DNA of 63,188 nt, filler included, from Octopus bimaculoides (Eukaryota): the NCBI RefSeq assembly GCF_001194135.2. It is 8 parts of 7 records of this genome, joined end to end, with 100 filler letters (N's around TTAATTAATTAA, not from the genome) between each part and the next. Parts side by side here need not be neighbours in the genome. Positions count along the whole stretch, not along the records: positions 23,023 to 45,945 come from NC_068989.1; 7 more parts are not named here. The stretch is one strand, 5' to 3'. Shown here piece by piece: positions 43,852-46,045 of the stretch. Made by a program: the position numbers and the translations under genes. How positions within the stretch are numbered: position 1 is the first letter of the stretch; every line of letters begins with the position of its first letter. Under the pieces are notes generated by a model that did no database searches, was not told where the DNA came from, and saw only the letters and a program-made list of their open reading frames with translations.

Positions 43852-45125
43852 AGATATAAATCAGCGACCATCGAATAAAAATGAAAATGATGTTGTTGTT
43901 GTCAGAGAGAGAGAGAGAGAGAAAGAGAGGTGCTGTTTGATACCATTCCTTCTGTCATTGTTATTAGCATTTTGTCTCTTCTCTTGTTTTTCACTCTTAC
44001 TTATTCTGTTACTCCTTTATTGCGTGATTTTGGGAAAACTTACAAACAAGCTCATTATTATAATAGATAATCATTATAAATACTTCAGATTTACCATATT
44101 GAACCGTCCTCATTTTGTATAATATTATATGAAATAATGCAGGGATGTATCAGTATCGGTAGAAGAGTTGATATGTGTGGTTGTGATCAATAATGTGCCT
44201 GTTATTGTGAGTGATTGTCCACATGCGCTGATATCACTGAACTTGAGAACATGTAAGCATGGATTCGTATATAGTCGAATGTCATTAGACCAGAATATAC
44301 ACGTTAGAATGTGAGTGTAAACATGTATGAATGAGTATACAGATAAATTTGAGTCTATATCTTATACATCCCGACACATTCCTTCACACACACACACACA
44401 CACACACACACACACACACACATACATACATACATACATACATACATACATACATACATACATACATACATACATGTGTCTGTGTGTGAATTACACGTTA
44501 AAAAATCGGACGAACCTAGTGTATGTTTAACGATCAAGGATTATCTACCAAAATCACGAGCCCGCAGAAGACCCGGGTGGTTTTCTGGCATGCTAGAAGA
44601 CCACTACGAATGAGGCTCCTCTCCACTTTTTTAAAAACATGTCTCTGGGAAAGGGTCATTGCCATAAAAAACTAGATATACAGCGACCAGTATTATACAT
44701 CTTGCGGATCATTTGCTTACGCTTCAGATCATCGCATTCTCACATTCCTAAACAATTGACCCATATTGGTACTCGATATCTTGCTCTAGTTTGGCTCTTT
44801 ATCATGTCAGTATGGTACAGTAGGCCTGTTGGGTGTTGTACAGGCCTTATTTGACCTAACAATTTTGTTCAGAGATGTTCATCTTATATCTATCTATCTA
44901 TCTATCTATCTATCTATCTATCTATCTATCTATATATATATATATATATATATATATATATATATATATATATATATATATATATAATTATAATACAGGG
45001 TATCTAAGAGATACCGCCACGCTGAAAAATAGCAGTCAAATTCTGACTCTAAAACCACAATAAATGTCCACATAGTACAAGGAGCGAAGACGACAACAAA
45101 ATAAACCAGTAAAAATAACAAGATA

Positions 45126-45184
45126 ATTCCAGATCCTGGATTTCTGGCTTTGCATAAATAATGCTTTGCCTTCATCGGTGGAAT
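45126..45184 (-). ncRNA. Type I hammerhead-like motif (inverted copy)
   Basis: Reverse complement of 45693-45751. Confidence 0.6.
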
Positions 45185-45692
45185 ATACTCAAGTACATGA
45201 AAACAAATATATAAACAGTATACTTACATATACGGACGTATACACACATATATATGCACGTATGTACACGACTAGGATCTGGAATTATCTTGTTATTTTT
45301 ACTGGTTTATTTTGTCGTCGTCTTCGCTCCTTGTACTATGTGGACATTTATTGTGGTTTTAGAGTCAGATTTGACTGCTATTTTTCAGCGTGGCGGTATC
45401 TCTTAGATACCCTGAATTATAATTTTAAATAATTATTACCTTTGATGGTTTTTATTCCGAAGCTGGCCACTTGATAAGATCAATATTTTAAATATCGATC
45501 TTACCCTTATTTATATAAATTAGTTTTGTCAGTGTATTTACTGCGCTGATATTCTGTCAGTATCGCACAAGGAGTTTTTAGGCGGGCTATTTAAGCTAGT
45601 CGTGTGCATACGTGCATATATATGTGTGTATACGTCCGTATATGTAAGTATACTGTTTATATACATATATTTGTATTCATGTACTTGAGTAT

Positions 45693-45751
45693 ATTCCACC
45701 GATGAAGGCAAAGCATTATTTATGCAAAGCCAGAAATCCAGGATCTGGAAT
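45693..45751 (+). ncRNA. Type I hammerhead-like motif (variant core CCGAUGA)
   Basis: ATTCCA CCGATGA a GGC aaa GCAT tattt ATGC aaa GCC a GAAA TCC a GGA TC TGGAAT. 6-bp stem I, stem II hairpin, near-palindromic stem III, AUC triplet. Predicted cut after 45745. Confidence 0.6.
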
Positions 45752-46045
45752 TATCTTGTTATTTTTACTGGTTTATTTTGTCGTCGTCTTCGCTCTTGTA
45801 CTATGTGGACATTTATTGTGGTTTTAGAGTCAGAATTTGACTGCTATTTTTCAGCGTGGCGGTATCTCTTAGATACCCTGTATTATAATTTTAAATAATT
45901 ATTACCTTTGATGGTTTTTATTCCCATGCTGGCCACTTGATAAGANNNNNNNNNNNNNNNNNNNNNNNNNNNNNNNNNNNNNNNNNNNNTTAATTAATTA
46001 ANNNNNNNNNNNNNNNNNNNNNNNNNNNNNNNNNNNNNNNNNNNN

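Follow-up and report, generated by a model that had tools for sequence, protein, structure and literature searches.

The described systems closest to the locus reported here are the minimal type I hammerhead motifs of Penelope-like elements (PLEs), the non-LTR retrozymes of animals (LTR, long terminal repeat), and the insertions that PLEs leave in genomes. The PLE minimal hammerheads (Cervera & de la Pena 2014, PMC4209133) occur in PLE-rich genomes, are believed to work as dimers, with poor cleavage in vitro, and are found mostly singly or as opposite-strand pairs 100-700 bp apart. Animal non-LTR retrozymes (PMC7229834; Li et al. 2026 preprint, 10.64898/2026.07.22.740005) are AT-rich, non-coding, head-to-tail units of a few hundred nucleotides with one type I hammerhead per unit, a highly self-paired RNA, and a proposed dependence on PLEs. 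PLE insertions are strongly 5'-truncated, form partial tandems, often carry an inverted 5'-truncated copy directly 5', and are biased towards (TA)n-type microsatellites (Craig et al. 2021, PMC8557442), a microsatellite-targeting role having been proposed in the same work for the CX2-5CxxC linker of Neptune-type PLEs. The short hammerhead-bearing PLE-type class was described between 2014 and 2020, the concept of a non-autonomous PLE derivative is already in the literature (PMC4209133; PMC7229834; bioRxiv 10.64898/2026.07.22.740005), and the derivation of the class from PLEs was argued again in 2026 (10.64898/2026.07.22.740005); our literature search found no hammerhead and no such element described in cephalopods. 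Here, we describe a hammerhead-bearing repeat unit of 466 nt from Octopus bimaculoides, located near the end of a 22.9-kb piece (positions 23,023-45,945, from NC_068989.1; four further gaps inside) of a window of 63,188 nt, by which we mean the whole stretch of joined genomic parts that was analysed.

In our view, the locus is probably a single insertion of a short, non-coding, non-autonomous retroelement built on this unit and dependent on the reverse transcriptase (RT) and GIY-YIG endonuclease of a PLE, and the element is best filed beside the PLE-associated minimal hammerhead elements. Its anatomy, established by direct reading of the region together with a repeat finder and blastn, is as follows, with positions counted along the window:

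44884-44986, no strand assigned: (TATC)n(TA)n microsatellite, the presumed target, whose run of at least eight TA stops at 44986.
44987-45275, minus strand: inverted, 5'-truncated partial copy of the unit (repeat finder, blastn and three-way alignment).
45126-45184, minus strand: hammerhead-like motif within the inverted copy, identical to the one at 45693-45751, with predicted cleavage between 45132 and 45131 (descriptor match and alignment).
45274-45739, plus strand: complete non-coding unit of 466 nt, 33.7% GC (repeat finder and blastn).
45274-45285, plus strand: start of the first direct copy, which holds the 3' part of the hammerhead alone (GGAUC / UGGAAU; sequence and alignment).
45693-45751, plus strand: type I hammerhead-like motif spanning the boundary between units 1 and 2 (descriptor match and sequence).
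45740-45945, plus strand: second tandem copy, ended by the assembly gap at 45946 (repeat finder and blastn).

If the unit is divided into X (positions 1-163), Y (164-322), and Z (323-466), the plus-strand order is (TATC)n(TA)n, the reverse complements of X and then Z, X Y Z, and X Y running into the gap; on the motif strand, the inverted copy thus lies 5' of the direct copies, and each unit boundary bears a minimal hammerhead-like motif. A first-pass annotation of this DNA had reported a 466-nt direct repeat at 45274-45479 and 45740-45945, and its coordinates proved right, the two segments being 97.6% identical over 207 columns with a period of 466/465 nt and differing, in a pairwise count, by 3 substitutions and 2 indels. 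The inverted copy of about 290 bp that it had placed at 44986-45275 against 45596-45890 is likewise present, at 94-97% identity: in reverse complement, the segment 44979/44987-45275 corresponds to unit positions 323-466 and then 1-151/158 (45596-45890), with 94.4% identity in the former part, 96.9% in the latter, and 3 substitutions and 3 indel events overall, one of them an indel of 6 nt. With copies that have diverged by roughly 2%, the insertion would seem to be old and probably dead. That each of the three copies carries private substitutions and indels, as the same annotation had held, is borne out both by the three-way alignment, where changes private to every copy are seen, and by the pairwise counts.

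These private changes bear directly on the suspicion that the assembly, beside the gap, wrongly joined or collapsed several loci or haplotypes of a genuine repeat family and so created the inverted and tandem arrangement. The structure does run into the N gap at 45946, four other gaps interrupt the piece, and PLE-type tandem and inverted insertions are known to trouble short-read assemblies (PMC8557442); one sequence used twice would not, however, yield three copies with private differences, and the inverted/direct junction at 45274/45275 is clean, with a microhomology of 2 nt (the overlap AG). The inverted-pair layout also recurs in the chromosome-level assembly of Octopus sinensis (14349-14543 of locus L002, one of eight loci, L001-L008, totalling about 206 kb, that were taken from the chromosome assemblies of O. 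sinensis and O. bimaculoides and chosen through PLE RT proteins rather than through the motif). We accordingly consider an assembly artefact quite improbable.

The predicted cleavage site (45279/45280) follows the junction at 45274/45275 after 5-6 nt, and the first-pass annotation, noting this proximity, had one monomer run almost exactly from cleavage site to cleavage site. The distance of 6 nt stands. The first direct copy includes AGGAUC, which lies 5' of the site, so its start is not the cleaved 5' end of a monomer; a multimeric or circular template, or a template jump, would fit it. Copies 1 and 2 are moreover colinear across unit positions 151-206 and both restart at the same nucleotide, and, since two truncations at the same nucleotide are unlikely, the template presumably had a 466-nt period, whether as a tandem array or as a circle. 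The same observation counts against the idea that we are looking at the pseudo-LTRs or the 3' untranslated region (UTR) of an ordinary autonomous PLE whose open reading frame (ORF) lies beyond the gap. Pseudo-LTRs do carry hammerheads and do form partial tandems with an inverted copy, and the right side of the locus is hidden in the gap; yet here a full 466-nt period without such an ORF separates two hammerhead positions, the colinearity of copies 1 and 2 runs over what would be the 3' end and the 5' start and would require two truncations at one nucleotide, and neither the PLE in the piece nor the PLE copies in L001-L008 resemble the unit. This explanation is, in our judgement, very unlikely.

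A short retroelement mobilised by PLE enzymes, the reading that we prefer, accounts for a layout that reproduces the published PLE insertions in several respects. The locus combines a partial tandem with an inverted 5'-truncated copy lying directly upstream relative to the hammerhead strand, and it sits at a (TA)n site, the (TATC)n(TA)n run stopping exactly at the left edge of homology (44986/44987). An AU-rich tract at about unit positions 152-185, next to (TA)n, begins where the outer end of the inverted copy falls. The locus differs from PLE insertions in that its unit has no RT or GIY-YIG ORF and that no tail of 30-40 bp was recognised. The suggestion of the first-pass annotation that the element is mobilised in trans by a PLE therefore holds in part: the published insertion layout is present and a PLE lies in the same piece, whereas no sequence is shared with an autonomous RT/GIY-YIG element, be it the PLE in the piece or those of the eight fetched loci.

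The motif at 45693-45751 reads AUUCCA CCGAUGA A GGC-AAA-GCAU-UAUUU-AUGC-AAA-GCC A GAAA UCC-A-GGA UC / UGGAAU, the slash marking the predicted cleavage after C45745 in an AUC triplet. Helix I is open and consists of 6 bp (AUUCCA/UGGAAU); helix II is closed, as expected for the type I order, and is built in two parts (GGC/GCC and GCAU/AUGC) around an internal loop; the minimum-free-energy fold of 45685-45760 retains the two helices. The second core box, GAAA, occupies 45733-45736, followed by U16.1 at 45744, with which A15.1 can pair, and by C17 at 45745 (position 45279 of the first unit). The near-palindrome AUCC-A-GGAU forms helix III, which cannot close in cis because its loop would be 1 nt; the self-duplex of AUCCAGGAU comprises 8 bp at -7.6 kcal/mol, as a motif that works as a dimer would need. 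The type I fold claimed by the first-pass annotation at 45693-45751, and its mirror image at 45126-45184, were thus both recovered, with identical sequences. An extra A follows A9, and a further A stands between C11.1 and G12, which we read as an A.A opposition at 10.1/11.1.

For the search, we wrote a descriptor modelled on the published one for minimal hammerheads and fitted after the fact: helix I (4 bp or more), the box CUGANGA, one nucleotide that may be absent, helix II (3 bp or more), GAAA, helix III as a hairpin or a palindrome, UH, and lastly helix I's 3' strand, with a relaxed form that tolerates a single mismatch in the core and also allows an extra nucleotide on the 3' side of helix II. 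The strict form finds nothing in the 22.9-kb piece, whereas the relaxed form has the two copies of the motif as its sole matches there. Simulated sequence of the same dinucleotide content gives 0.04 matches per 21.4 kb on both strands, and none in 120 simulations when helix I is required to have at least 6 bp. The hammerhead-like motif is far beyond chance.

Compared with the PLE minimal hammerheads (PMC4209133), the motif shares the type I order, the long two-part helix II, the nucleotide after A9, and a (near-)palindromic helix III too short for closure in cis, which implies dimers; the two motifs of the window, about 510 bp apart on opposite strands, also match the solitary or paired arrangement at 100-700 bp and the PLE-rich genomic setting. 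The differences are the core, which is CCGAUGA rather than CUGANGA, the second unpaired A 3' of helix II (the A.A at 10.1/11.1), the position outside the repeats of an RT-encoding PLE, and the failure to match any Rfam model. With the animal non-LTR retrozymes (PMC7229834; 10.64898/2026.07.22.740005), the locus has in common the AT-rich non-coding unit of a few hundred nucleotides, head-to-tail copies, within the 1.44 units visible before the gap, with one type I hammerhead-like motif per unit, a predicted RNA that is highly self-paired, and the proposed PLE dependence, the unit being, at 466 nt, slightly above the quoted range of 150-450 nt. Retrozymes, however, have canonical hammerheads with contacts between loops 1 and 2, where the octopus motif is of minimal architecture with no loop 1 near the core, and they form arrays from dimers to large multimers that give demonstrated circular RNAs, where our locus shows 1.44 units. 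The proposal that this is a cephalopod retrozyme or mini-Penelope is upheld as regards the PLE-type layout and the short tandem unit, and is not supported as regards a canonical retrozyme hammerhead and a match in Rfam.

The unusual core is not peculiar to the window. With the same descriptor, the approximately 206 kb of the eight loci yielded five further folds, four of which have C at position 4 (C4):

L001 890-948, plus strand: canonical-core fold, UAUCA CUGACGA AGGG...CCCU GAAA UCGG-U-CCGA UA/UGGUA.
L002 14461-14498, plus strand: C4 fold, UUGC CCGAUGA ACG-GGAA-CGU GAAA CUC-U-GAG UA/GCAG.
L002 3769-3735, minus strand: C4 fold, GUUU CCGACGA A GAGC-UCC-GCUC GAAA CG UU/AAAC.
L005 49920-49873, minus strand: C4 fold, AGUCA CCGACGA GCAUU-AAUAUA-AAUGC GAAA ... 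UA/UGGCU.
L006 12150-12225, plus strand: C4 fold, ACUCCA CCGAUGA U CUG...CAG U GAAA CAAUUG UA/UGGGGU.

Simulation predicts, per 208 kb, 0.017 folds with CCGANGA, 0.13 with the canonical CUGANGA, and 2.8 with all 19 core variants taken together, and the 17 other single-mismatch cores, used as in-genome decoys, gave 5 matches in total in the real sequences. Seen from the heptamers, 8 of the 16 instances of CCGA[CT]GA stand within such folds, against 1 of the 44 instances of CTGA[CT]GA. Helices I, II, and III vary in sequence from locus to locus while their pairing is kept; the plan of helix II (3 bp, internal loop, 4 bp, 5-nt loop) is common to L001 and the window, with compensatory changes, and UCCACCGAUGA is common to L006 and the window, L006 having U.U where the window has A.A. 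The states found at 10.1/11.1 across the class are G-C, A-U, U.U, and A.A, with A-U in L001 and in the plus-strand fold of L002. A 79% copy of the element around L002 3769-3735 (minus strand) lies at L005 52842-52880 and has CUGACAA where L002 has CCGACGA; because both core CpGs have decayed in the L005 copy, C4 is the ancestral state in this family. We observe in passing that CpG deamination turns a C4 core into a seemingly canonical U4 core while breaking the C3-G8 pair. The motif of the window thus belongs to a real, recurrent octopus class of hammerhead-like folds, in which C4 is the usual state within this sample and not the lesion of one copy, and the A.A at 10.1/11.1 is within the range of the class. 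The density in this PLE-biased sample is roughly one C4 fold per 40-50 kb. Whether octopus, and perhaps all cephalopods, harbour a large PLE-associated hammerhead population with CCGAYGA as its normal core is a wider proposition that we put forward tentatively, as a real possibility that falls short of probable.

None of the five other octopus motifs lies in a tandem array. A 77.6% palindrome at L002 14349-14543 contains two hammerhead-like motifs that face each other head to head, of which the one on the minus strand (core at 14430) has decayed; an apparent 'empty site' of this pair, derived from flanking SINE-like repeats (SINE, short interspersed nuclear element), was ambiguous and was dropped. 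A distant relative of our unit is a non-coding element of about 456 nt at L001 723-1178, which bears the canonical-core hammerhead, lies within the (TA)n part of a (TG)n(TA)n(CA)n compound microsatellite, and repeats its final ~77 nt, inverted, at its own 5' end. Local alignment of the window unit with this element scores 39, against 22.8 +/- 2.9 for shuffled sequences (maximum 33), a similarity that is weak but significant, and the homologous stretch is the GCTGGCCA(C)TTGATA region.

It is here that a purely DNA-level origin has to be weighed, namely satellite slippage or fold-back inversion, or a foldback element resembling a miniature inverted-repeat transposable element (MITE) at a TA site, with no RNA intermediate and with the hammerhead-like motif as a passenger or relic. 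The window contains a 99-nt inverted repeat (arms 45039-45137 and 45274-45372, 136-nt spacer), and the whole of 44979-45431 is MITE-sized; the L001 relative at 723-1178 can be seen as an element of about 456 nt with terminal inverted repeats of 77-118 nt and flanking TA runs; and neither poly(A), nor a target-site duplication, nor a second copy of the family was seen, the right end of the locus lying in the gap. Both strands of the unit also fold equally well (z = -4.7 against shuffled sequences for the RNA of the 466-nt unit and -5.6 for its minus strand), and the fold z-score was rejected as an indicator of strand on this account. A MITE nevertheless leaves unexplained that the direct period passes beyond the supposed terminal inverted repeat into Y (45437-45479 equals 45903-45945), and the inverted segment corresponds to one unbroken Z-X stretch of the tandem unit, as a truncated copy would. 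Hammerheads are, furthermore, known from PLEs and retrozymes rather than from DNA transposons, and the extra inverted match outside the L001 element consists of the compound (TG)n(TA)n(CA)n microsatellite only. On balance, we regard a DNA-level origin as unlikely.

Several observations weigh against our own interpretation as a PLE-dependent hammerhead element. As regards the ribozyme, the first core box has C at position 4 where CUGANGA is required; the unpaired nucleotide between C11.1 and G12, or the A.A at 10.1/11.1 as which it can be read, is not among the tolerated variants that we found in the literature; and the window alone offers no covariation, because its two copies of the motif are identical. 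Comprehensive mutagenesis found low activity in single and double mutants of the CUGA turn, the C3/G8 swap excepted (PMC9901934), so the activity of C4 motifs is not to be assumed. Searching with the Rfam hammerhead models gave no hammerhead at the gathering threshold or at E<=10 in the 966-nt region, and none at E<=10 in the whole piece; Rfam also misses the canonical-core motif of L001 at E<=0.1, however, and its silence is therefore weak evidence for this minimal class. As regards the element, blastn against the rest of the piece and the ~206 kb of octopus DNA found no other copy of the 466-nt unit and low-complexity matches only; 1.44 units are visible before the gap; and the right edge of the insertion falls in the gap at 45946, together with any target-site duplication. 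No sequence is shared between the unit and either the neighbouring PLE or the PLE copies of the eight loci, which are a very small sample relative to the genome. Runs of at least eight TA occur once per 1.33 kb across all octopus DNA sampled, and are so frequent that proximity to (TA)n is uninformative and exact abutment alone counts. Finally, the choice of loci around PLE fragments may inflate the density of the motif.

A natural precedent for the core exists in a U4C variant of a viroid hammerhead, cited in Perreault et al. 2011 (PMC3088659), which is reported to have lower activity in vitro but still to support infectivity; in the literature that we searched, a single paper mentioned U4C. 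The substitution is the same, with the difference that the viroid case concerns one variant of a tertiarily stabilised RNA replicon, whereas octopus C4 is common across several unrelated-looking genomic elements. The combination of the C4 core with the A.A at 10.1/11.1 suggests, from the sequence, that this particular copy would cleave slowly at best.

If a PLE-dependent retroelement is accepted, its history can be sketched as a series of conditional steps. Transcription of a source array of 466-nt units, or a circular RNA of them, would supply the template RNA, in which two hammerheads would pair through the near-palindrome AUCCAGGAU and cleave after AUC, such pairing being required because the 1-nt loop prevents helix III from closing in cis. 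The resulting monomers would perhaps be ligated into circles. A PLE enzyme would then nick the (TA)n and reverse-transcribe the multimeric or circular template, with priming possibly on the AU-rich tract at about unit positions 152-185 by the nicked (TA)n target, a step proposed by inference only, and the inverted 5' copy would arise by template switching or twin priming.

The statement in the first-pass annotation that the unit has no ORF was nearly right: ORFs of 81 and 88 amino acids occur in the element, neither has a meaningful Pfam match, and the longest finds no homologue among 5.8 billion proteins. Exact-protein look-ups of these two ORFs, of a flanking ORF of 71 amino acids, and of a PLE ORF of 216 amino acids returned none on record. 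An exact 23-mer scan of the JGI metagenome contigs gave 0 matches, a tRNA scan gave no matches, so that there is no tRNA-derived SINE head, and no poly(A) was seen at the locus. In the 966-nt region, the whole piece, and three octopus loci, Rfam reported only sub-threshold matches to microRNAs and snoRNAs in microsatellite-like sequence, which were set aside as chance: 45614-45687 and many microsatellite-like stretches resemble mir-297, mir-1277, mir-3149, and further families (in one case at 37.5 bits where the gathering score is 90), and these arise from (TA)/(TG)-rich hairpins rather than from microRNA genes. The ratio of observed to expected CpG was likewise rejected as an age signal, the value of the unit (1.15, against a background median of 0.72) being equalled by 14% of background windows and not significant.

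The PLE of the same piece lies 6 kb upstream of the unit and provides context only:

33115-38940, plus strand: degenerate Penelope-like element (RT and GIY-YIG Pfam matches).

Its ORF at 35086-35691 matches RVT_1 and its ORF at 38189-38524 matches GIY-YIG, with a frameshift between the latter and the ORF at 37624-38274, within which lies the linker CGRPNCGTC (CX4CX2C). The element contains an internal 91% duplication (35538-36212 / 37523-38212) and has a counterpart of about 85% identity in O. sinensis (L001 16461-19451), and its RT ORF matches annotated proteins from O. sinensis (with identities up to 86%), O. bimaculoides, and Argonauta hians. A search of the 3' UTR of this PLE turned up no hammerhead. 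In L006, at 11715-11843, a PLE 3' end homologous to about 38820-38905 of the window is followed immediately by (TA)n and then by a hammerhead segment on the same strand; either both targeted one microsatellite, or the PLE and the hammerhead element are physically linked. Elsewhere in the piece, 31742-32095 (minus strand) is a further retroelement fragment with an RVT_1 match (E = 3.4e-6), and two short ORFs with GIY-YIG-like strings (VYIGQT..., VGLTEG...) that Pfam does not support lie at 27607-27849 (plus strand) and 29591-29830 (minus strand); these may be old PLE/Naiad remnants. A SINE-like repeat abundant in octopus, found many times in all eight loci, has copies at 38941-39093 and 42685-42844.

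The locus itself is one more short hammerhead-bearing PLE-type retroelement, and it is the class of C4 cores that is worth following. The octopus hammerhead-like folds are mostly C4, in a CpG that decays to the canonical U, and, if such motifs cleave, they would amount to an experiment of nature on the uridine turn in the hammerhead core; if they are active in vivo, U4 would be dispensable in a whole natural lineage of hammerheads. Should this be true, standard descriptors and Rfam models would have missed a cephalopod repertoire of which the 466-nt element is one member, and, if C4 motifs do cleave, consensus-based searches would under-count ribozymes in some lineages.

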